A DNA stretch of 64,000 bases from Pecten maximus (taxonomy: Eukaryota): NCBI RefSeq assembly GCF_902652985.1, contig NC_047015.1:16678001-16742000 (forward strand), written 5' to 3'. Position 1 is the first letter of the stretch; the number at the start of each line of letters is the position of its first letter. The notes beneath the pieces were generated by a model that was not told the origin of the DNA, did no database searches, and worked only from the letters and a program-made list of their open reading frames with translations. A program made the translations under genes and the position numbers. Below are positions 694-32,600 of this stretch, one piece after another.

Positions 694-3600
694 CAGATGT
701 GTCTGTGGTGAGACATGTCACCTGATGTGTCTGTAGTGAGACATGTCACCTGATGTGTCAGTGGTGAGACATGTCACCTGATGTGTCTGTGGTGAGACAT
801 GTCATCTGATGTATCTATGGTGAGACATGTCACCTGATATGTCTGTGGTGAGACATGTTATCTGATGTGTCTGGTGAGACATGTCACCTGATGTGTCTGT
901 AGTGAGACATGGCACCTGATGTATCTATAGTGAGACATGTCATCTGATGTATCTATGGTGAGACATGTCACCTGATGTGTCTGTGGTGAGACATGTCACC
1001 TGATGTATCTATAGTGAGACATGTCATCTGATGTACCTATGGTGAGACATGTCACCTGATGTGTCGTCTATGGTGAGACATGTCACTTGATGTATCTATA
1101 GTGAGACATGTCATCTGATGTATCTATGGTGAGACATGTCACCTGATGTGTCTGTAGTGAGACATGTCACCTGATGTATCTATAGTGAGACATGTCACCT
1201 GATGTATCTGTGGTGAGACATGTCACCTGATGTGTCTGTGGTTAGACATGTCACTTGATGTATCTATAGTGAGACATGTCATCTGATGTATCTATGGTGA
1301 GACATGTCACCTGATGTGTCTGGTGAGACATGTCACCTGATGTGTCTGTGGTGAGACATGTCACCTGATGTATCTATAGTGAGACATATCATCTGATGTA
1401 CCTATGGTGAGACATGTCACCTGATGTGTCGTCTATGGTGAGACATGTCACTTGATGTATCTATAGTGAGACATGTCATCTGATGTATCTATGGTGAGAC
1501 ATGTCACCTGATGTGTCTGTAGTGAGACATGTCACCTGATGTATCTATAGTGAGACATGTCACCTGATGTATCTGTGGTGAGACATGTCACCTGATGTGT
1601 CTGTGGTTAGACATGTCACCTGATGTATCTATAGTGAGACATGTCATCTGATGTATCTATGGTGAGACATGTCACCTGATGTGTCTGTGGTGAGACAAGT
1701 CACCTGATGTATCTGTGGTGAGACATGTCACCTGATGTGTCTGTGGTGAGACATGTCACCTGATGTGTCTGTGGTGAGACATGTCACCTGATGTGTCTGT
1801 GGTGAGACATGTCATCTGATGTGTTTGTGGTGAGACATGTCACCTGATGTGTCTGTGGTGAGACATGTCACCTGATGTGTCTGTGGTGAGACATGTCATC
1901 TGATGTATCTATGGTGAGACATGTCACCTGATATGTCTGTGGTGAGACATGTTATCTGATGTGTCTGGTGAGACATGTCATGTGATGTGTCTGTGGTGAG
2001 ACATGTCACCTGATGTGTCTGTGGTGAGACATGTCATCTGATGTATCTATGGTGAGACATGTCACCTGATATGTCTGTGATGAGACATGTTATCTGATGT
2101 GTCTGGTGAGACATGTCACCTGATGTGTCTGTGGTGAGACAAGTCACCTGATGTATCTGTGGTGAGACATGTTATCTGATGCGTCTGTGTTGAGACATGT
2201 CACCTGATGTGTCTGTGGTGAGACATGTCACCTGATGTGTCTGTGGTGAGACATGTCACCTGATGTGTCTGGTGAGATATGTCACCTGATGCGTCTGTGG
2301 TGAGACATGTCACCTGATGTGTCTGTGGTGATACATGTCACCTGATGTGTCTGTGGTGAGACATGTCATCTGATGTGTCTGGTGAGACATGTCACCTGAT
2401 GTGTCTGGTGAGACATGTCATCTGATGTATCTATGGTGAGACATGTCACCTGATATGTCTGTGGTGAGACATGTCACCTGATGTGTCTGTGGTGAGACAT
2501 GTCACCTGATGTGTCTGTGGTGAGACATGTCACCTGATGTGTCTGTGGTGAGACATGTCACCTGATGTGTCTGGTGAGACATGTCACCTGATGTGTCTAT
2601 GGTGAGACATGTCACCAGATGTGTCTATGGTGAGACATGTCACCTGATGTGTCTGTGGTGAGACATGTCACCTGATGTGTCTGTGGTGAGACATGTCACC
2701 TGATGTATCTATAGTGAGACATGTCATCTGATGTATCTATGGTGAGACATGTCACCTGATGTGTCTGTGGTGAGACATGTCACCTGATGTGTCTGGTGAG
2801 ACATGTCACCTGATGTGTCTGGTGAGACATGTCACCTGATGTGTCTATGGTGAGACATGTCACCAGATGTGTCTATGGTGAGACATGTCACCTGATGTGT
2901 CTATGGTGAGACATGTCACCTGATGTGTCTGTGGTGAGACATGTCACCTGATGTGTCTGTGGTGAGACATGTCACCTGATGTGTCTGTGGTGAGACATGT
3001 CACCTGATGTATCTATAGTGAGACATGTCATCTGATGTATCTATGGTGAGACATGTCACCTGATGTGTCTGTGGTGAGACAAGTCACCTGATGTGTCTGG
3101 TGAGACATGTCACCTGATGTGGTTGTGGTGAGACATGTCACGTGATGTGTCTGTGGTGAGACATGTTATCTGATGTGTCTGGTGAGACATGTCACCTGAT
3201 GTGTCTGTGGTGAGACAAGTCACCTGATGTGTCTGTGGTGAGACATGTCACCTGATGTGTCTGTGGTGAGACATGTCACCTGATGTGTCTGTGGTGAGAC
3301 ATGTCACCTGATGTGTCTGTGGTGAGACATGTCATCTGATGTGTCTGTGGTGAGACATGTCACCTGATGTGTTTGTGGTGAGACATGTCACCTGATGTGT
3401 CTGTGGTGAGACATGTCACCTGATGTGTCTGTGGTGAGACATGTCACCTGATGTGTCTGTGGTGAGACATGTCACCTGATGTGTCTGTGGTGAGACATGT
3501 CACCTGATGTGTCTGTGGTGAGACATGTCATCTGATGTATCTGTGGTGAGACTTGTCACCTGATATGTCTGTGGTTAGACATGTTATCTGATGTGTCTGG

Positions 3601-5480
3601 TTAGACATGTCACCTGATGTGTCTGTGGTGAGACAAGTCACCTGATGTATCTGTGGTGAGACATGTTATCTGATGCGTCTGTGGTGAGACATGTCACCTG
3701 ATGTGTCTGTGGTGAGACATGTCACCTGATTTGTCTGTGGTGAGACATGTCACCTGGTGTGTCTGTGGTGATACATGTCACCTGATGTGTCTATGATAGG
3801 ACATGTGATCTGATGTGTCTATGGTGAGACATGTCACCTGATGCGTCTGTGGTGAGACATGTCACCTGATGTGTCTGTGGTGAGACATGTCACGTGATGT
3901 GTCTGTGGTGAGACACGTTATCTGATGTGTCTGGTGAGACATGTCACCTGATGTATCTATGGTGAGACTTGTCACCTGATATGTCTGTGGTTAGACATGT
4001 TATGTGATGTGTCTGGTGAGACATGTCACCTGGTGTGTCTGTGGTGATACAAGTCACCTGATGTATCTGTGGTGAGACATGTTATCTGATGCGTCTGTGG
4101 TGAGACATGTCACCTGATGTGTCTGTGGTGAGACATGTCACCTGATGTGTCTGTGGTGAGACATGTCACCTGATGTGTCTGTGGTAATACATGTCACCTG
4201 ATGTGTCTGTGGTGAGACATGTCACCTGATGTGTCTGGTGAGACATGTCACGTGATGTGTCTATGGTGAGACATGTCACCAGATGTGTCTATGGTGAGAC
4301 ATGTCACCTGATTTGTCTATGGTGAGACATGTCACCTGATGTGTCTGTGGTGAGACATGTCACCTGATGTGTCTGTGGTGAGATATGTCACCTGATGTGT
4401 CTGTGGTGAGACATGTCACCTGATGTGTCTGTGGTGAGACATGTCATCTGATGTATCTGTGGTGAGACTTGTCACCTGATATGTCTGTGGTTAGACATGT
4501 TATCTGATGTGTCTGGTTAGACATGTCACCTGATGTGTCTGTGGTGAGACAAGTCACCTGATGTATCTGTGGTGAGACATGTTATCTGATGCGTCTGTGG
4601 TGAGACATGTCACCTGATGTGTCTGTGGTGAGACATGTCACCTGATGTGTCTGTGGTGAGACATGTCACCTGATGTGTCTGTGGTGAGACATGTCACCTG
4701 ATGTGTCTGTGGTGAGACATGTCACCTGATGTGTCTGTGGTGAGACATGTCACCTGATGTGTCTGGTGAGACATGTCACCTGATGTGTCTATGGTGAGAC
4801 ATGTCACCAGATGTGTCTATGGTGAGACATGTCACCTGATGTGTCTATGGTGAGACATGTCACCTGATGTGTCTGTGGTGAGACATGTCACCTGATTTGT
4901 CTGTGGTGAGACATGTCACCTGGTGTGTCTGTGGTGATACATGTCACCTGATGTGTCTATGATAGGACATGTCACGTGATGTTTCTGTGGTGATACATGT
5001 CACCTGATGTGTCTGTGGTGAGACATGTCATCTGATGTGTCTGGTGAGACATGTCACCTGATGTGTCTGGTGAGACATGTCACCTGATGTGGTTGTGGTG
5101 AGACATGTCACGTGATGTGTCTGCGGTGAGACATGTCACCTGATGTGTCTGTGGTGAGACAAGTCACCTGATGTGTCTGTGGTGAGACATGTCACCTGAT
5201 GTGTCTGAGACATGTCACCTGATGTTTCTGTGGTGAGACATGTCACCTGATGTGTCTGTGGTGAGACATGTCACCTGATGTTTTTGTGGTGAGACATGTC
5301 ACCTGATGTGTCTGTGGTGAGACATGTCACCTGATGTGTCTGTGGTGAGACATGTCACCTGATGTGTCTATGGTGAGACATGTCACCTGATGTATCTATG
5401 GTGATACATTTCACCCGATGTGTCTTTGGTGAGACATGTCACCTGATGTGTGGTGAGACATGTCACCCGATGTCTACAGT
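694..5480. repeat. 28-bp satellite/minisatellite array, about 170 copies (consensus GGTGAGACATGTCACCTGATGTGTCTGT, with 26-bp variants)
   Basis: Period measured directly (AGACATGTCA at 3241, 3269, 3297). The unit contains the palindrome GACATGTC and a GGTGA/TCACC inverted pair. Confidence 0.97.
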
Positions 5481-6616
5481 GAGAGTTGATCAGCTTTATG
5501 TAACTACACATAGCTATAGATGTCTCTGTATCCTTGATCTCTACAAGATACTATCGTGTGGTGAAGACATGATCAGCTTGATACCACTAAACATAGCTAT
5601 AGGCGACTCTGTATCATTGATCCCTACACATTCGATACTATTGTGTGATGAAGACATGAATCACCTTACTAAACCTTACATTATCAAAGCGAAATCCACA
5701 TAAATATCCAGAGGAAGGCATAATTGAAATTCCTAAGGCAGGATGGAATTCCAGATTATCTCCATAGTCTTAAATTGGCACAAACTCTTGTTCATAACAG
5801 ATTTTATATCAAGGCATCACAGATGGTATGAATCCCCTCACACCAAGAGTAATCAATACAGTAAATCTATTCATAGTTCCACAGACCTCTGTTTTAATCC
5901 CAGGTGTTTGAATCATAGACTTGTTGCTCTGGAATATATCACACAACACAGAGAATTGTATTTCCTCCACAATGGAATTTATTCAACTTCCATCCATAAC
6001 CATGTAACAAAGTGCTAAATCATCATACCTCCTCCAGGTACAATCTAAAGCTGAACACAGTTTTCAATATTTTTAGCACGTCTTGTTTATCTTTGAAATA
6101 TGATTGATCATACTTAAAAAGTCTCTGAAATATGCTCATCCAAAAACGAGATTTAGCCGAGATTTAGCCAAGGTTTACCACAAACCAGGTAAGCTAGTTA
6201 TTGCAACAGGGACAATTGTGCTAGAGCAAAAGGCAATAAACATGATCATGCACTGATATTCGATGGATAAATATGTTCATCAATAAAATGAAAAGCATCC
6301 TCCTACACTGTATAACACTAGTACATGTATTACAAGTATCCTCAGCACTCCAAAAGAAAATAACAATACAGCTCTAGATATCATTTATACAGTCTCAAAT
6401 ATCAGGCAGATTAAGTTGAAGAGGAATGGTTCAGTAACCGAACTTTCAACACCAACTTTACACATTAACTATACATTCTAATGTACTTTGGGATATTTTA
6501 GTTGGGGTCATATTTAGGTTTATTTGGTGCCTGGCATGAAAGTGCCAAAATTTAATACACGGAATTATGTAACGAGTAAGATGTCTATCTTTGTTTGGTG
6601 AAACCATCAACAGGAG

Positions 6617-7164
6617 TTGTTCATACCTGTAATAGGAGATACATTTCAGACAATGCCTTGTTCATACCTGTAATAGGAGATACATTTCAGACAATGCCTT
6701 GTTCATACCTGTAACAGGAGATACATTTCAGACAATGCCTTGTTCATACCTGTAATAGGAGATACATTTCAGACAATGCCTTGTTCATACCTGTAATAGG
6801 AGATACATTTCAGACAATGCCTTGTTCATACCTGTAACAGGAGATACATTTCAGACAATGCCTTGTTCATACCTGTAACAGGAGATACATTTCAGACAAT
6901 GCCTTGTTCATACCTGTAACAGGAGATACATTTCAGACAATGCCTTGTTCATACCTGTAACAGGAGATACATTTCAGACAATGCCTTGTTCATACCTGTA
7001 ACAGGAGATACATTTCAGACAATGCCTTGTTCATACCTGTAACAGGAGATACATTTCAGACAATGCCTTGTTCATACCTGTAACAGGAGATACATTTCAG
7101 ACAATGCCTTGTTCATACCTGTAACAGGAGATACATTTCAGACAATGCCTTGTTCATACCTGTA
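6617..7164. repeat. 41-bp minisatellite, about 13 near-identical copies
   Basis: Unit TTGTTCATACCTGTAA(T/C)AGGAGATACATTTCAGACAATGCC, with starts at 6617 and 6658. Confidence 0.95.
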
Positions 7165-8151
7165 CTTTTAACATTGTACAATAAACACTACACATACATC
7201 ACCTGAGACTTGATATCTAGGTTTGTGTGTAATCAATAACAAGGAATTATTACAGTATAATGCTGTATATCCAGACTCCTGATGTGTCCACACATCATAA
7301 TGTTGTAATGAATTATAGGAACATCTGCATGACCAAACAGATTAATGTAAAGTATCCCCAAACAGGTTTGATAAAAATCTGTCAACAGAATAACAGAAAC
7401 TTTGTATACAAAATATCAGAAGGTATTATGTCTTCAACCTCTAACAATTAACAGACAACTTAACATCATTGAGCAGGAGTGAAGCCGACACAACACAGTG
7501 CTGTAGGCCAGTAACATAGTAACATCTGTGTCCACACCTTGCATAGATCACCGAGAAAGACCTTAACACCTGTGAAAGGCACAGAGTGACTACCATCATA
7601 TATTCCATACCATACATACATATTCCATCTCACTGTGTTGATCAAAGGTATAGGATAGGTAGCCAGGTGGAAAGTTTTCTGGTACAACTCAGATGAAGAG
7701 TATTCAAATTATCCTGATAACTTATTAGGACAAGGTATAAGTGAATTCCCAATAAAATCCCTACACCATTTATTGTGACATATTGAGTGGTTTAGTCTCC
7801 TAATGTCTGTTTTATATAGGCCTCTGTAAATCTGTACACCATGGGCTCTGACTCCATCATACAGTGTACTGACAAGTCATTCCACCATCAAGCAATATTT
7901 GTGCAATAACTTAACATCACTACACATGTAAGCTAACACAGAACAAAACATAAACATATTTATATATTATCAACATCAATAACGTTCATCTGTGTGTTTT
8001 AAACATCAATACACACTACGTAATCTTTGGTGTTCCAAACCAAAAACTGTGGTATCATGCTAAGGAGTGTATCCCTTCATTGAACAGAGGACAAGTCTTG
8101 TCTAATGAGTTGGTGTGGTCCCAGATTAGAGATCTCGGAGTTTCACAGAGA

Positions 8152-11100
8152 TCAAGGCAGATCTCGGTCGATGCGGACAAGTCTCTCTATGACAGCATCC
8201 AACGCTTTGTGGGTAGGTGTATCACTGAATGCCTCCAGGAAATTCTTGCCCTGCTCCAGACAGTGAGTCAGCTTAGGGTCGAGAGGGATACAGCCTGTAA
8301 AACAGACAGTGAGCCAACTTAGGGTCGAGAGGGATACAGCCTGTAAAACAGTGAGTTAGCTTAGGGTCGAGAGGGATACAGCCTGTTAAACAGACAGCGA
8401 GTCAGCTTAGGGTCGAGATGGATACAGCCTGTAAAACAGACAGTGAGTCAGCTTAGGGTTGAGAGGGATACAGCCTGTAAAACAGTGAGTCAGCTTAGGG
8501 TCGAGATGGATACAGCCTGTAAAACAGTGAGTCAGCTTAGGGTCGAGAGGGATACAGCCTGTAAAACAGACAGTGAGCCAACTTAGGGTCGAGAGGGATA
8601 CAGCCTGTAAAACAGACAGTGAGTCAGCTTAGGGTCGAGAGGGATACAGCCTGTCAAACAGACAGTGAGCCAACTTAGGGTCGAGAGGGATACAGCCTGT
8701 AAAACAGACAGTGAGTCAGCTTAGGGTCGAGAGGGATACAGCCTGTAAAACAGTGAGTCAGCTTAGGGTCGAGAGGGATACAGCCTGTAAAACAGACAGT
8801 GAGTCAGCTTAGGGTCGAGAGGGATACAGCCTGTAAAACAGACAGTGAGCCAACTTAGGGTCGAGAGGGATACAGCCTGTAAAACAGACAGTGAGTCAGC
8901 TTAGGGTCGAGAGGGATACAGCCTGTAAAACAGACAGTGAGTCAGCTTAGGGTCGAGAGGGATACAGCCTGTAAAACAGACAGTGAGCCAGCTTAGGGTC
9001 GAGAGGGATACAGCCTGTAAAACAGACAGTGAGTCAGCTTAAGGTCGAGAGGGATACAGCCTGTAAAACAGACAGTGAGTCAGCTTAGGGTCGAGAGGGA
9101 TACAGCCTGTAAAAAGTGAGTCAGCTTAGGGTCGAGAGGGATACAGCCTGTAAAACAGTGAGTCAGCTTAGGGTCGAGAGGGATACAGCCTGTAAAACAG
9201 ACAGTGAGTCAGCTTAGGGTCAAGAGGGATACAGCCTGTAAAACAGACAGTGAGTCAGCTTAGGGTCGAGAGGGATACAGCCTGTAAAAAGTGAGTCAGC
9301 TTAGGGTCGAGAGGGATACAGCCTGTAAAACAGTGAGTCAGCTTAGGGTCGAGAGGGATACAGCCTGTAAAACAGACAGTGAGTCAGCTTAGGGTCGAGA
9401 GGGATACAGCCTGTAAAACAGTGAGTCAGCTTAGGGTCGAGATGGATACAGCCTGTAAAACAGACAGTGAGTCAGCTTAGGGTCAAGAGGGATACAGCCT
9501 GTAAAACAGTGAGTCAACTTAGGGTCGAGAGGGATACAGCCTGTTAAACAGACAGTGAGCCAACTTAGGGTTGAGAGGGATACAGCCTGTTAAACAGACA
9601 GTGAGTCAGCTTAGGGTCGAGATGGATACAGCCTGTAAAACAGCGAGTGAGTCAGCTTAGGGTTGAGAGGGATACAGCCTGTAAAACAGACAGTGAGTCA
9701 GCTTAAGGTAGAGAGGGATACAGCCTGTAAAACAGACAGTGAGTCAGCTTAGGGTCGAGAGGGATACAGCCTGTAAAACAGACAGTGAGTCAGCTTAGGG
9801 TCGAGAGGGATACAGCCTGTAAAACAGACAGTGAGTCAGCTTAAGGTCGAGAGGGATACAGCCTGTAAAACAGACAGTGAGTCAGCTTAGGGTCGAGAGG
9901 GATACAGCCTGTAAAACAGACAGTGAGTCAGCTTAGGGTCGAGAGGGATACAGCCTGTAAAACAGACAGTGAGTCAGCTTAGGGTCGAGAGGGATACAGC
10001 CTGTAAAACAGACAGTGAGTCAGCTTAAGGTCGAGAGGGATACAGCCTGTAAAAAGTGAGTCAGCTTAGGGTCGAGAGGGATACAGCCTGTTAAACAGAC
10101 AGTGAGTCAGCTTAGGGTAGAGAGGGATACAGCCTGTAAAACAGCAAGTCAGCATAGAGTTGAGAGGGATACAGCCTGTAAAGCAGTGTGTTACGTCTAC
10201 GTTTGTTACAAGTGTGTAAATTTCATTAAATCATCTTCTGATATATATTTTGACACTTTATCTTTTTAAAACCTTCTGCTAGTGTAGATATCAAAGGCAG
10301 AAATTCACATACATTTCAAAGGATTTCATTGAAACCTTATTGTAAAATACGGACATTTATACCTACCCAGAAAAGGTACATGGAACTGCTTTGCCAATGA
10401 CTCCCCTCCACCCTTTGAAAAAATGTTGGTACATTCCTGAGAAAAGAAGAAATATAGTAATAAATGTAAACTTTATTTACTTAAAAACAGTTTGAAACAA
10501 TTTCTATATACTTACATCCATCAGACTATACAGTAATAAAGTAATACAATCTACATGTAAGTGTTTCATTGTAAACATTAAACAACTTAATTGAATATTT
10601 TACATTTTAAAATAAAGCTGACAAAACTACTTGTGTTCACATAAAAAGGACACATTTATTGTTCAATGTGGACAGACATACCCACACATGTTCTGTATAC
10701 CAAGGTCACACTTACTGTACAATGTGGACAGACAAACCCACTGATGTTCTGTATACCAAGGTCACACTTACTGTACAATGTGGACAGACATACCCACTCA
10801 TGTTCTGTATACCAAGGTCACACTTACTGTACAATGTGGACAGACAAACCCACTCGTGTTCTGTATACCAAGGTCACACTTACTGTACAATGTGGACAGA
10901 CAAACCCACCCATGTTCTGTATACCAAGGTCACACTTACTGTACAATGTGGGCAGACAAACCCACTCGTGTTCTGTATACCAAGGTCACACTTACTGTAC
11001 AATGTGGACAGACAAACCCACTCAAGTTCTGTATACCAAGGTCACACTTACTGTACAATGTGGACAGACAAACCCACCCATGTTCTGTATACCAAGGTCA

Positions 11101-14100
11101 CACTTACTGTACAATGTGGACAGACAAACCCAATCATGTTCTGTATACCAAGGTCACACTTACTGTACAATGTGGACAGACATACCCACTCGTGTTCTGT
11201 ATACCAAGGTCACACTTACTGTACAATGTGGACAGACATACCCACTCGTGTTCTGTATACCAAGGTCACACTTACTGTACAATGTGGACAGACAAACCCA
11301 CCCATGTTCTGTATACCAAGGTCACACTTACTGTACAATGTGGACAGACAGAACCACTCGTGTTCTGTATGCCAAGGTCACACTTACTGTACAATGTGGA
11401 CAGACAAACCCACCCATGTTCTGTATACCAAGGTCACACTTACTGTACAATGTGGACAGACAAACCCACCCATGTTCTGTATACCAAGGTCACACTTACT
11501 GTACAATGTGGACAGACAAACCCACTCGTGTTCTGTATACCAAGGTCACACTTACTGTACAATGTGGGCAGATAAACCCACCCATGTTCTGTATACCAAG
11601 GTCACACTTACTGTACAATGTGGGCAGACAAACCCACCCATGTTCTGTATACCAAGGTCACACTTACTGTACAATGTGGACAGACAAACCCAATCATGTT
11701 CTGTATACCAAGGTCACACTTACTGTACAATGTGGACAGACAAACCCACCCATGTTCTGTATACCAAGGTCACACTTACTGTACAATGTGGATAGACAGA
11801 ACCTCTCATGTTCTGTATACCAAGGTCACACTTACTGTACAATGTGGATAGACAGAACCTCTCATGTTCTGTATACCAAGGTCACACTTACTGTACAATG
11901 TGGACAGACAAACCCACTCATGTTATGTATACCAAGGTCACACTTACTGTACAATGTGGACAGACAAACCCACTCATGTTCTCTATGAGACCAATGACTG
12001 GAATGTGGGTCTTTTTACAAAAGGTTAATTCCCTTCGCACATCTCCAACAGCTACGGCCTGTAAACATAGAAGGACATACAAATCACATATTTTAGGCTT
12101 TTCAACAACTGGCAACAGAGCAACTTAAACTAAGCAGAGTCTAATCAAAGTTAGTTAGGAAGTAGAGGCCTTCATGCTACGTATAGAGACTTGTATCTAT
12201 ATAGACAAGTATCATGGAAATCCCTGTGATACTGCCATAGTTATCTCCCTTCCCCAGTGATGTAGTACACCTCAAAGTTCACATACACTTTTGATGACTG
12301 TAGGACATTCAAGATCACAAGATCAAAGATTTTTAAAATGAAAAGGTCAATGAACTGAACTGTTGAAAATGAGAAAATGGGTAGAACAAAAGTTGAATGC
12401 CTCTGAGTTATTGAGATGGGTCCATGAGATGGGTCCATGAGATGGGTCCATAAATGTTCAAAGGAGGAGTCTGACAATTGAAGTCCACAACTGTGCTGAT
12501 GATTACAGCCTTTTCAGTTTAAAAATATGAATGAAGGGGATGGTGATTGCCGTGAAAATATAGATGGTTGTAAGTTTGATATCACTGCACACTATCCTAA
12601 CATATCAGTGACCGCTGTCCTGGTACCTGAGGTGTAGTGACTAGAACGGCTCCATCAGGATTGTAGGATTTGAGACTCTCCACTACACTTATGTGTTCAT
12701 CTGATGTACCAGGGGGCGTGTCTATCACTAGGTATTCAAGGTCACGCCACACCACGTCACTGAGGAACTGCTTGATCATGGCTGAAGTAAAAAATATACA
12801 TACAGTAGTTAAATATACAGTAGAGCTGTGATCACAAAAACTGCTCATCATGAAAATAAAAGTAGAGGAATACGATTGCCTATTTCATGCTTTCTCCAAT
12901 GAAATGCACCAGTTTTACTTAAAAGTTTTAAAAAGCTGAAACTTTTAACCATGTTCAATAAAAATGACCTGTACACTTTTTCTGTACATCTTACCCAAAT
13001 CTGATCATAAATCTAAAGACTACATGCATATCTTATTTTTCAACATATTCCAAAGATTCTTTAACTTGCTTGAAAGATTCTATTGCTAAATGAAAAACTC
13101 TGTTCAGGAGAGCTACGCATGTGTAAGTGTGAAGATTTTGTCACCTGTTTTCTTGGGCCCTCTCCACACAATAGCGTCATTGGCATCCTCTAGGAGAAAC
13201 GCTATGGACATCACAGACAAATGCTGGTCTTTGTCCACAAACACAGGCAACCATCTAATAACAAATTAGTAAAGGAGTCATGTGGCAACATATTCAAAGT
13301 GCACAACCAAGAGAAGCCTATGCATGAAATTTGAGCAATATCCATCCAGTTCTTCTTGAGAAATAGTGATAACTGGATCATAAAAGAACAGGTATTGAAT
13401 ATATGAACAATGACAGAATCATATAATAACAGATATTGAATATTTGAATGATAACAGGATCAGTATTTTGAATCAATGGGATATACAAGTCATTTAACAT
13501 TACTAACTCATTGGATTAAAAATAAAATTATTTCTTTTCAAAAAGTATTACCTCGGCTAGTTTTCAAATAATACTTAATATTACAAACCCTTCTGGACAC
13601 TGGTGAATATCTTGGTTTTGCAGATTGAACATGCGTGGAATACTTGGTCCACATAAATCCAGGTCCAATAATCCTACCTGTCGCACAAATGACAACAATT
13701 CACACAAAGCACTCCCTCCATAAATAAAACAGTATTCATTAATCTTTGATCAATAAAGGCTGGCAAAAAAATACATTGAAAATGTATTAAGTTTCACAAA
13801 GCATTAAAAAGTAGAAAAAAGGCAAATAATCAAATAGAAATCTCAAAATGTTGTAAAGCAACTCCTACTGCTGTTTGACCAGCCAAGATATAGTACCATG
13901 ATGTAAAGCAAATGATAGGTAAGTATCAAGAGGTTTTACTGTCGAATATAGAATGAAGTTAAATAAGTAGTGAACAAATGTACAGTACCTTTTTACCAGC
14001 ATGTTTGAGACCAAGGGCTATCTGAGTAGCCACAGTACTCTTGCCAACTCCTCCTTTTCCAGACAGGACAAGAATGACATGTTCAATATGGGACAAATGG

Positions 14101-17100
14101 TCTGTTCCTATAAAATATAGTATAACATTGCTTTTTTTAATTATGTATGGATCCTCCTATACTTGTAAATCCTGTAGTAGTATCAAAGATTAGTCTGACA
14201 GGGGAAGGGAGCTAACTCTTCAAGGAGATATTGATATACAAAGAGCAGCTAAATCGAGCACTGCACAAATCAAGTCATACAGTGAAACAGAGACAAAAAT
14301 TGGATAAAACAAAAGACTGCACAAGCCACCACTACTCTGAAATTAACAGGAGTTATCAAAAGACAACATAGCTCGCCGAATGGGTTCAAATTTGGAATTA
14401 GTTTCTTAAAAGTAGGTCAAAGGTCACAGTCAGGTCAGCAAGTCCACAAATGTAGACTAATAATGGAAAGGTCTTGTCACAACGAACACACATGTCAAAT
14501 ATAAAAGCCCTACCTTGTACAGCTAACATACAGTATCAAGGTTAAAGCTAACATACAGTGGCCGAGGTTAAAGTGTTTTAAAAATAGATCAAAGGTCAAG
14601 GTCAGCAGGTCCACAAATGCAGTACCAATGGAAATGTCTTGTTACATGGAGCACATATGTCAAATACCTAAGTTGCATCCTCATTAGTATATCCACAACA
14701 CTATTTTCATAAATACTTCAACCTAGCTGTCTAAGGACGATGCCATTGCCGACGTGGATAATAGCAATTGCTTTCCTGGACTTTATTCCTGCATAAGGTA
14801 AAACATATGTGTGAAGTGCAATGAACAATATCACTATGCAGCAATGTGCAAATCTACACATCAGGCAGTTGTGTACATCACTTTAAATCAAAAACTTCTA
14901 TCTTATTACCATAGCAACCCAAGTTTTCGCAACTGTTCCCATCATGTTCAGCTGCCCACAATGTATGTACCAATTTTCAGCAAAATATCATACATTATCT
15001 AAATTTTGACCAATCAGAGACCTCCATTTCATTGTTTTAGGCACCCTTTAAAATCCTTTAGTACCGAATTTCAGCAGATTAGACAATGCCTTCTACAATC
15101 TGAAGCCAAACAAGAGGCCCATGGGGCCTGTATCGGTCTCCTGATTGGATTAGACCAAACGACAAAAATGTTCATGTTCAATTCATTAATCTTGAACAAT
15201 GCTATACATTGTATATGGTTATAGTGGGGATCCCAACTGCTTTGAAGAAATAATGAAGCCCAGACTCTCTAAGGGTATGAAAGACCTCAAGGATTGCTTT
15301 TACAACATGATCGTGTTTAAAGAGACTAAGTCCCTTAGGGTGGGAAAAGACCCTTGGGCCTAATTTTACATCAGAATGGTGTTCATTCCTTAACGTCCAG
15401 CGATGCAATACCTGGTTATGGGATGGAGGGTCACAGCAACCATTTATGCAAAATCTATTCCCCAAAGATGCTTCTGACCAAATTGGGTTCAAATCCATTC
15501 ATAAATTTATGACAAGTACCAGGTAGCAATTTAAAGAAATTACCTCTATTTTCCCTGTTGGGGCCCCGCCCCTTTAGCCCCTAGGGCATCATAGCATCAT
15601 TTACACAAAATCTGTTCCTCTTCCCCAAGGATGTTTCTGGCCAAATTGAGTTAAAATCCATTCATAAATTTATTACTAGTAGCGATTTAAAGGAATTGCC
15701 TGTATTTCCCCTATTTGCCCCCGTCAGCATAAATGCAAAATCTGTTTCCCTTTCCCCATGTTTCTGACTAAATTAGGTTCAAATCCATTCATAACTTAAT
15801 GACTAGTAGTGATTTAAACGAATTACCTCTATTTCCCCTTTTGGGCCCGCCCCTCTGGCCCCTTGGGGGTCAGAATCGTCATTTATGCAAAATCAGTTTC
15901 CCTTCCCCCAAAGATGTTTCTGACCAAATTTTGTTAAAAATCCACTATGTATTTAATGACCAGTAGCGATTTAAAGCAAATGCTGACGGATTAGGGATGG
16001 ACAAAGGGACGACGGATGCCGCACCATGGCATAAGCTCAAAGTAATAGTATATGTTGGTATAGTAGATAGTGTCATACTACACTGTACACCAATACATGT
16101 ATTAGACAAGTCAGTACTTTCAGTACACATACTTTGATTGTTTGATATTCCAGCTGGAGTACCTCAATACAGCACAAGTAAGATAGTCAACTTATGTTAA
16201 TGAAAATTAATATTTACATTTCTAATTTTCAGAAGCCTGTTAAGTGTCAAATCACGAAACGGTTTTCATCATTGTGTTTATCATACCATACCAATCAAAT
16301 ACCAACTTTCATGAAAATCAAACAATATCTAATAACAACCACTGGACATTCCTTTTGTGGACTATGTTCATTTTTTTTTTCGGTTTTATCTTAGGGCATG
16401 TCTCATTCCATTTCTCAAATCATGTTGATGCCCCAATGTTTGGTTTTATTTTGTTTAACGTTCTATTAACAGCCAGCGTCATTTAAGGACGTGCCAGGTT
16501 TTGAGACGGAGGAAAGCCAGAGTACCCGGAGAAAACCCACTGGCCTACGGTCAGTACCTGCCCCACGTAGGTTTTGAACTCGCAACCCAGAGGTGAAGGT
16601 CTAGTGATAAAGTTTCGGGACACCTTAACCACTTGGCCACAATGGCCCCAAATAGAACAAGAAGAAAGAATGATAATAATAAGAAGAATCCAGGTAAAAC
16701 TTTGTCTAGTGGACTTAATTATTTTACAACTACAATGTATGTACAACAGAATGGGGAACCAGAATTACAAGTCGTCGTGGAAATGATAGATCTGACACAA
16801 ATAATGAAGCAACCATTGATGTATCTTTACAATTCCAGTGATGCAAAGACAGTGATTCAGATCTTCCTAGCATCCACTATATACATACAAATGTATTCAA
16901 ATAAATGTATTGACTATAAAACCAATTCATATTAGAATGAATATTCAGACCCTGCCTTCACTACTCGCTGGCATGACCATCTGTTAGAAAGTGTCTGTCA
17001 GTCATCCAGAGCAACAATTACATACATGCCAGACTTCCTGGCCTGAGACAAAATCTCCCATATTTTCAAGTTATTTATTGTCTCCCGGGAGAAGAGTCTG

Positions 17101-29600: not shown

Positions 29601-32600
29601 GGTCATATGAGGACAAGTGTCAAGGACATACCAACAGCCAGGGTCATATGAGGACAGGTGTCAAGGAGACACGAACAGCCAGGGTCATATGAGGATAGGT
29701 GTCAAGGAGACACTAATAGTCAGGGTTGTATGAGGACAGGATGTGTCAAGGACATACCAACAGCCAGGGTCATATGAGGACAGGTGTCAAGGAGACACTA
29801 ACAGTCAGGGTTGTATGAGGACAGGATGTGTCAAGGACATACCAACAGCCAGGCTCATATGAGGACAGGTGTCAAGGACATACCAACAGCCAGGGTCATA
29901 TGAGGACAGTATGTGTCAAGGAGACACTAACAGCCAGGGTCATATGAGGACAGGATGTGTCAAGGAGACACTTACAGCCAGGGTCATATGAGGACAGGTG
30001 TCAAGGACATACCAAAAGCCGGGGTCATATAAGGACAGCTGTCAAGGAGACACTTACAGCCATGGTCATATGAGGACAGGTGTCAAGGACATACCAACAG
30101 CCAGGGTCATATAAGAACAGGATGTGTCAAAGAGACAGTAAAAGCCAGGGTCATATGAGGACAGGTGTCAAGGAGACACCTATAGAGGAAAACAAAGCAC
30201 AGAAAGACAAAGCAGTGAGGAAAGAAAGGAAATATTAAAGAGCTGCAATGGATGCAAAAGATCTACTTTGGTCTCTTCAGTGTCCCCTAGATACGTGTAG
30301 AAGGCATGGAAGAATATCCACAAATCTTAAGGGGGCCTATTGTGGTATGTATTATTAGTGTTTATGATTCAAGATCTCAAGAAAGGATGTCTATGTGTGA
30401 AAACAAACTTACCATGTCATTGCTTTGTTCCTTTATCTCGTCCTGTATAGCAGAGGACTGTAACATGTCTATATGAAAACAAACTTACCATGTCATTGCT
30501 TTGTTCCTCTATCTCGTTGTCCTGTATAGCAGAGGACTGTAACATGTCTATATGAAAACAAACTTACCATGTCATTGCTTTGTTCCTCTATCTCGTTGTC
30601 CTGTATATCAGAGGACTGTAACATGTCTATATGAAAACAAACTTACCATGTCATTGCTTTGTTCCTCTATCTCGTCCTGTATAGCAGAGGACTGTAACAT
30701 GTCTATATGAAAACAAACTTACCATGTCATTGCTTTGTTCCTCTATCTCGTTGTCCTGTATATCAGAGGACTGTAACATGTCTATATGAAAACAAACTTA
30801 CCATGTCATTGCTTTGTTCCTCTATATCGTTGTCCTGTATATCAGAGGACTGTAACATGTCTATATGAAAACAAACTTACCATGTCATTGCTTTGTTCCT
30901 CTATATCGTTGTCCTGTCAAACAGGGGACAGTACATAGCAAGTTAAGTTGCTTTATCTTCTGCAGAACTAAATTTAATGTGAGTAAAAATGATTTTATAT
31001 GAGACTGAGCAAAGACACAATCCCTTGGATACCACTCTGATAGATAAACCTGTACCTGAAATATTTCTCCATCCCTAGGACAACTGCAGTTATATTCTTC
31101 TCTTGATAATGCTGTTGTAAGGTATGTATGTATTGCTTCAGAGTTGTCTGCCCTCGGTCTTCTTCCATCTGTACCTGATAAAAAACTTACTGGTTTTAAT
31201 ACTGATGCAACTTGTTTTTGAGTTCAACATACTTATGCCTTTCATTTCAAGTTTTTTTTTTGTATTTTACATAATATTCAAATAAAGGAACATTAACACA
31301 ACAATATCCATTAACACCCCCATTAACAGAACTGGAATTTAAGTTAAAAACATATTTTTTAAAATGACAGGGATATTGGTCATCTTGTTTTCTGACAGAA
31401 CTCAAAAATACCAAAGCCAACATACTGCAAATGCCATGAAATATTCAAATCATTTCAATGATATTTGAATGGAAATGAAATTGTATATTATATACATGTA
31501 GCACACAACATACAATGGCAACTTATAAAGGCATGTCACAATACTGTTACAAACCCAAAAGAGACAGCCTGACCAAAATACACACAGAATATTTCACATC
31601 ATACAAAACTTTGCACTCAATATATTGATGTTCAGTCAAACATGAAATATATGTGATATTCATTGGAAAACCACTGAATATCCTCTTCATATCCTAGTGA
31701 AAGAAAAAACCAACAAGGTTTGTAAATTAAGGTACCTGTTTGAAATTTTCCACAAAGTGGACAAAGTCTGATGTAGGTATAAGGGTAAGAACATTATCTT
31801 CCACCATCTGTCTTGTCCATGTATTCACCTGTCAGGAAATAATCACATGTATTGTTTTAAAGAAAGAAGACATTTTAAAGATTTTAGCATTTTTGAGCCT
31901 GGTGGCTATGAATGAAGGTCAAGGTCATGCTCATTCATTTAAACAATCTTCATAGCCCTTAACCCCAGTATACTATAGGTCCAATATCAGGTCTCTGGGT
32001 ATCTTGGTCCAAATTTGGAAGTAATCCACCAAAGGGTTAAGGAGGAGTAGTGTTTTGAAATAAAAAGTCTTACGCACGGCGGATGGCGCACAATGACGGA
32101 AGGAACACGATGGCTATAGGTCATCCTGACCCTTTGGGTCAGATGACATAAAAATGACACCTGTGACTTTAAATGAAGGTCAAGGTCAATCATTTGAACA
32201 CGTTTGATAGCCCTTCATCCCAGCATGCTAAACACCAAATATCAGGTCTCTAGGCAAATGTAAATTGTTTATGAACAGATGATGAATGACAATGGATAAA
32301 AGGCGATTAGACTTTGTACATGTAGGTGAACTAAAAACACCCCTGACTGCTTCAAACAATCTCTTTGATAATAAAAATTAAAAAAAAACAAAAAAGATTA
32401 AAGTCAATGTCACAATGATCCAATGATAAAGAACTGCACATTGTCAGGGGGAGATTAAGGTATAAATCAATTTCCATTAAATATCTCTGGTTTAAAGATT
32501 ATTGTCAGGTGATGCAAGTATAGTATGAGAATATTTAAATGCAAACTTATTAAAAAGTTTATTTTCCATGTCAGTGTAAGTCCTACAAGTAAGGAGGATA

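Follow-up and report, generated by a model that had tools for sequence, protein, structure and literature searches.

Minisatellites whose first monomer spans an exon-intron boundary were described for F7, IFI6 (6-16), CBS, LMNB2 and PDGF, the last example also being given as PDGFA (Borensztajn 2006, PMC1557585). In human F7 the pseudo-donors of the array are functional, yet the most upstream donor alone is chosen, and the first two pseudo-sites of IFI6 and CBS are used as well (PMC1557585). Comparable structures of amphioxus, termed 'mirages', lie on the donor or the acceptor side of an intron and leave splicing undisturbed, and their boundary copies escape homogenisation (PMC3087553, PMC3902484). 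According to one proposal, a real exon might eventually arise from the exonic part of a mirage (Ebner 2010, PMC3087553). In this study, we analysed a stretch of 64,000 nucleotides of the scallop Pecten maximus genome (contig NC_047015.1, positions 16,678,001 to 16,742,000; hereafter the window), in which the NUBP2 gene, on the minus strand, carries a 56-bp tandem array that reiterates the donor of exon 6. This array is very probably a tolerated splice-junction minisatellite of the mirage or F7 type, and thus a by-product rather than a set of mini-exons. It adds a member to a class that is known from human genes and amphioxus.

The closest described relative is the 37-bp variable number tandem repeat in intron 7 of human F7. 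In both arrays the first monomer lies over the boundary, the authentic donor is followed by identical pseudo-donors and the most upstream donor is the one found in the normal mRNA. However, the F7 unit contains 4 nt of exon and is present in 5-9 copies, whereas the scallop unit contains 33 nt of exon with a CPxC motif and is present in about 23 copies; moreover, the scallop repeat junction creates an AG. Pseudo-site function was assayed for F7, whereas the scallop decoys are known from sequence and RNA contigs. With the amphioxus mirages (Adh3, the globins BflGb6/9, TnC and PGBD5) the scallop locus shares boundary-spanning repeats on the donor or acceptor side, normal splicing and a concerted evolution inside the array from which the boundary copies are excluded. 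In contrast to these, the host is a bivalve mollusc, and while somatic and allelic length instability was shown for the amphioxus mirages, the scallop array has been seen in one assembly and in collapsed contigs. Human IFI6 (6-16) and CBS intron 13 likewise harbor a boundary-spanning minisatellite that reiterates the donor, but there the first two pseudo-sites are used constitutively, with in-frame insertions in IFI6, whereas splicing from a later donor in the scallop gene would change the reading frame (56 nt) and run into a TGA, and the contigs contained no such product. Our search for scallop-specific literature on junction minisatellites found none in the collection searched. Four features of the class are present at the locus: a tandem array, the junction within the first monomer, use of the exon-adjacent site in RNA contigs, and a homogenised interior with diverged edges.

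The 56-bp array in intron 6 of NUBP2

The exons were searched singly against Pfam and solved structures. Five flanking exons match PF10609 in order (positions 4-34, 35-61, 67-96, 99-146 and 148-182, the last being exon 6), and the best solved relative is CFD1 (6g2g), in which exon 6 aligns with residues 167-203 and its CPHC stands opposite CPNC. Because of the ordered matches and of CFD1 as the closest solved protein, the predicted identity as NUBP2/CFD1, an Mrp/NBP35 P-loop NTPase with a C-terminal CPxC motif, appears sound. The same gene had been named in a previous interpretation of the window made from its letters (the sequence-only reading). The features of the region are as follows, in the direction of transcription.

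11948..12058, minus strand: NUBP2/CFD1 exon 6, 111 nt, phase 0/0, 37 residues (RNA joints at both ends; PF10609; CFD1 6g2g)
within 11948..12058, minus strand: last 33 nt of exon 6, the exonic part of copy 1
11925..11947, minus strand: spacer 1, nucleotides 1-23 of intron 6, authentic donor GTAAGT at its start and ACAT at its end (joint 10435/11947 in X1/X15 and X9)
10693..11924, minus strand: 22 decoy units of 56 bp (copies 2-23) with GTAAGT intact in each (repeat scan; 86-nt contigs from three studies)
10622..10692, minus strand: decayed distal copy 24 and partial copy 25, the edge beyond homogenisation (sequence)
10437..10621, minus strand: non-repetitive rest of intron 6 with a pyrimidine-rich acceptor, 15/17 pyrimidines at -20..-4 (sequence)
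10366..10436, minus strand: NUBP2 exon 7, 24 residues (RNA contigs: direct joint to exon 6)

Tandem Repeats Finder describes the array as 10646-11986 with a period of 56, 23.9 copies, 95% matches and 0% indels. The minus strand carries 23 units between 10693 and 11980, each exactly 56 bp long and without indels, and accordingly 23 GTAAGT donors on that strand follow each other at a spacing of exactly 56 nt, from 11947 down to 10715. Each unit consists of an exonic part of 33 nt, AACATGAGTGGGTTTGTCTGTCCACATTGTACA (11 codons in phase 0/0: AAC ATG AGT GGG TTT GTC TGT CCA CAT TGT ACA), hereafter the cassette, and a 23-nt spacer, GTAAGTGTGACCTTGGTATACAG. Copy 1 is the authentic 3' end of exon 6, with a spacer that terminates in ACAT, not ACAG. 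Copies 2-23 are decoys (n=22), and an AG directly precedes 21 of them. Copy 24 (10692-10637) differs by 12 changes and its donor is dead (ATAAAT), compared with 0-4 changes per unit in the homogenised interior; beyond it lies a partial copy 25 that is only partly recognisable. Through this decay of copy 24 and the partial copy 25 the array has the diverged edge typical of tandem arrays. In a genome-wide search the 56-bp array occurred once in the 918-Mb Pecten maximus genome.

Adjacent cassettes are separated by 23 nt, and the shortest usable intron between cassettes would be 79 nt. Read-through beyond the true donor adds 9 more codons and then reaches a TGA. The sequence-only reading had described this composition of the unit, the 23 donors without indels, the change of AG to AT next to the true donor and the TGA upon read-through, and on each of these points it agrees with our analysis.

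Transcript contigs across the array

The transcript data were assembled contigs of public runs, four of which were aligned to the region; rare isoforms are dropped by such assembly. The X1 contig (705 nt) runs through exon 5, exon 6 and exon 7 with the direct joint 11948/10436. The same three exons with the same joint are found in the X9 contig (1,837 nt), which stems from a recorded RNA-Seq library. The figures for X15 are identical to those for X1, and the two probably represent the same data and are not independent. The direct joint was therefore observed in two independent studies, and a third one, X3, is compatible with it. In X3, exon 7 is apparently joined at 10435/10995, but the 29 nt that support this joint have the same sequence as the true exon end; the contig ends after these 29 nt, and the alignment is flagged as fitting two places. 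Hence, the X3 joint is compatible with the canonical junction and constitutes no evidence for a decoy donor. Taken together, the contigs show the first, exon-adjacent donor joined to exon 7, with the duplicates located downstream of this authentic donor.

Neither a cassette between exons 6 and 7 nor use of a decoy donor was found in the contigs of the four runs, which are contig-level data of limited sensitivity.

Decoy units of the ATGGGT type were present as 86-nt contigs in runs from three independent studies. A length of 86 nt (56 + 30) is what an assembly with a word size of 31 should give on merging repeat copies. These contigs, together with a piece of intron 5, fit unspliced RNA or DNA traces. 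They also bear on an explanation in which the array, or its length, was made by mis-assembly of long reads, an outcome that the sequence-only reading had named as fatal to its proposal. The copy number is indeed known from the assembly alone, and repeats are hard to polish. However, ATGGGT-type units are distinct from the true exon and recur in three independent studies; therefore the repeat is no invention of the assembly and the decoys are present in other samples. Moreover, the variant units are ordered, the edges are decayed and comparable arrays occur throughout the genome, so that an artefact is extremely improbable.

Variation within the repeat unit

Among the 14 variant states of the unit, 12 lie in the cassette and 2 in the spacer. 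The sequence-only reading was thus correct in placing the substitutions mostly in the cassette, but taken by itself this contrast has little weight (binomial P = 0.033, Fisher P = 0.052). Its listed variants were all recovered (NTSG, NMGG, NMIG, NLSG, NISG, F>Y, F>S, TGT>TGC and, in two copies, YPHC), and S>R, V>I and the synonymous GGG>GGT, which it had missed, were found in addition. It had further stated that no substitution creates a stop. This is true of the sequence, but uninformative, because 2/99 of the possible substitutions in the cassette make a stop and the probability of finding none in 12 states is P = 0.78. The cassette states comprise 2 synonymous and 10 non-synonymous ones, against a neutral expectation of 18/99 synonymous, and the first cysteine of the motif is lost (Cys to Tyr) in the two YPHC copies. 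The cassettes show no coding constraint, and their evolution at the protein level is neutral. Even at synonymous positions, the final 12 nt of the cassette do not vary; therefore this invariance acts at the nucleotide level and not at the protein level.

These observations bear directly on the proposal of the sequence-only reading that the array is a combinatorial set of 21 in-frame micro-exons, in which non-adjacent cassettes are spliced in and add one or more 11-residue segments, each with a CPHC motif, to NUBP2. The cassettes are indeed in phase 0/0 and free of stops, 21 of them lie between an AG and a GTAAGT, and the parts that carry splice signals are nearly invariant while the cassette interior is variable; exonic parts of mirages have also been suggested as future exons, as mentioned above. 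Nevertheless, no contig of the four runs includes a cassette, the lack of stops is expected by chance, and the ratio of synonymous to non-synonymous states is neutral, with the motif cysteine gone in two copies. The frozen last 12 nt point to nucleotide-level invariance, and in 8 donor-bearing arrays picked without regard to similarity the donor core varies at least as much as the remainder of the unit. Furthermore, the decoy acceptors are pyrimidine-poor (8/17 pyrimidines at -20..-4, versus 11, 12 and 15 in three RNA-verified acceptors), and no intron shorter than 79 nt could be formed. Such a micro-exon array is therefore very unlikely, and the direct joint, the neutral cassettes, the seemingly weak acceptors and the documented precedents of F7 and the mirages favor the tolerated splice-site satellite, which the sequence-only reading had offered as its alternative.

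Several points weigh against a purely tolerated satellite. The variable sites are clustered: 11/13 fall within nucleotides 4-21 of the unit (scan P = 3.5e-4), the longest stretch free of variable sites covers 28 nt with the donor at its centre (P = 6e-4), and the hexamer ATGAGT carries a different substitution at each of its six positions (P = 0.0025). In 20/22 decoys this hexamer differs from that of the true exon. Such clustering was absent from five other arrays of the window, including a second NUBP2 array at an acceptor (see below), and it is not predicted by simple neutral turnover of whole units. In addition, low-level use of cassettes or decoy donors may have escaped detection, because contigs drop rare forms and products of decoy donors would carry an early stop and probably be degraded.

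Within the clustered region, the pair T12+C14 was found on two backgrounds, and therefore either exchange within units or recurrent mutation is indicated. Possible causes of the clustering are a local mutation hot spot and a homogenisation that is limited to the longest perfectly identical stretch, while selection on the decoy splice signals is, in our view, the least likely cause. It is tempting to speculate on the donor-centred block of 28-38 nt, which is identical throughout the 23 copies although the adjacent 18 nt may change freely or are pushed to do so. Potentially, the decoy signals are under selection, either because they serve rarely used in-frame micro-exons or because an intronic array of U1-binding sites influences how NUBP2 is processed, or the block drives its own homogenisation. 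We consider this account improbable. Two further ideas were rejected. A general conservation of decoy donors does not hold in the 8 donor-bearing arrays referred to above, and an RNA structure that hides the decoys is not indicated, since three units fold worse than shuffled sequence (z = +1.8). No Rfam family was found in 6000-15000.

The decoy donors might also be used unproductively. Splicing from donor 2, 3 or a later one to exon 7 would add 56n nt with an early TGA, the product would decay and the array would hold back, or tune, the expression of NUBP2. In favor of this, each of the 22 decoy donors has the sequence of the authentic one, an identity that extends over 12 nt upstream and at least 16 nt downstream, and the first two pseudo-sites of human IFI6 and CBS are used (PMC1557585). 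Because the stop follows 9 codons past the true donor, such products would be under-represented in contigs. On the other hand, no contig of the four runs matches them, the pseudo-sites are silent in F7, LMNB2, PDGF and the amphioxus mirages, and nothing supports a regulatory role. Unproductive use therefore seems unlikely.

For the tolerated junction minisatellite, the following origin can be proposed. A 56-bp segment straddling the donor of NUBP2 exon 6, with 33 nt of exon and 23 nt of intron, would have been duplicated in tandem when intron 6 was about 220 nt long; without the array, the present intron is estimated at about 223 nt. This duplication may have been aided by a short homology between ATAGAG of the exon and the similar ATACAG of the intron. 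The array would then have grown to 23-25 copies by slippage or unequal exchange, in a genome that appears to produce minisatellites at a very high rate. The whole array would be removed within an intron of 1,511 nt, and its exon-like parts would be non-coding and free to drift at the protein level. According to our computation for an intron of about 223 nt, 20% of the tolerated 56-bp duplications straddle the donor and 40% straddle either junction.

Minisatellites in the gene, the window and the genome

Minisatellites, taken as arrays with a period of 12 or more and 4 or more copies, are abundant in this genome. In 20 random samples of 10 kb, 28 arrays cover 17.9% of the bases, and in the 64-kb window the share is 19.8%. 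The genome paper reported 0.99% simple repeats and 16.7% unclassified repeats (PMC7191990). Given the sampled coverage of 17.9% against 0.99% simple repeats, much of the unclassified share may be minisatellite.

NUBP2 itself harbors a second junction array, on the acceptor side of intron 7 (8257-10186, minus strand, 46 bp x 43). Its unit consists of the last 8 nt of the intron, TTTTACAG, and of 38 nt from the start of the final NUBP2 exon (13 residues), and RNA contigs run from exon 7 into the sequence of this unit. Further downstream lies an array of 13 copies of 41 bp with one variable site (6617-7164), which contains CAGGTATGA on the minus strand. The X9 contig extends 1,159 nt past exon 7 and would end at the edge of this array; therefore the NUBP2 3' UTR (untranslated region) may reach it. 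Just downstream of NUBP2, a 4.8-kb array of 28 bp x 172 (696-5473) has a donor-like GTGGTGAGA in its unit. Elsewhere in the window, an array of 79 bp (30398-30917), which also has higher-order periods of 155 and 234 bp, contains ATGGTAAGT on the minus strand. In another part of the genome, 10 copies of a 54-bp unit (L014, 3212-3771; C1:29952211-29952770) carry both a donor-like ACGGTAAGT and CAGGTAAAC per unit.

A universal donor-like core of scallop minisatellites was considered and rejected, as an unbiased set of 31 arrays revealed a mild enrichment of donor-bearing arrays without a shared core. The score for a 5' splice site exceeded that of shuffled sequences (p < 0.05) in 6/31 arrays, compared with 1.55 expected; the matrix follows metazoan consensus values and is rough. 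With the same rough matrix, a score of at least 8 bits was reached by 6 arrays, versus 2 in the reversed control.

A common origin with a dispersed satellite was likewise rejected. Several satellites with units of 27-31 bp are about 70% identical to the NUBP2 unit, but through the donor-like core only: a 27-bp satellite on C10, which is a weak match, and arrays on C19, C8, C9 and C15 share nothing with it except the core GTACAGTAAGTGTG. Single 14-mer matches outside those arrays are about as frequent as those of a control pattern. We read this likeness as convergence rather than common origin. Four satellites of 27-31 bp (L009, 1538-6438, C10:27753537-27758437; L010; L012; L015) comprise 68-228 copies with the core (G)TACAGTAAGTGT or a close variant. 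In 3/4 of them the core is less variable than the rest of the unit, in a sample that is biased because the arrays were found through that core.

As a single locus, the array is ordinary, with NUBP2 joining a class already described from human genes and amphioxus. Its value as a natural test of 5' splice-site choice, in which 23 identical strong donors that share their 33-nt upstream context are offered and the first is used, is modest. For annotation it poses a risk, as the cassettes can be taken for exons by gene predictors. The pattern of variation below the level of the unit is the sole part that might teach something new, either about the homogenisation of minisatellites or about selection on decoy splice sites.

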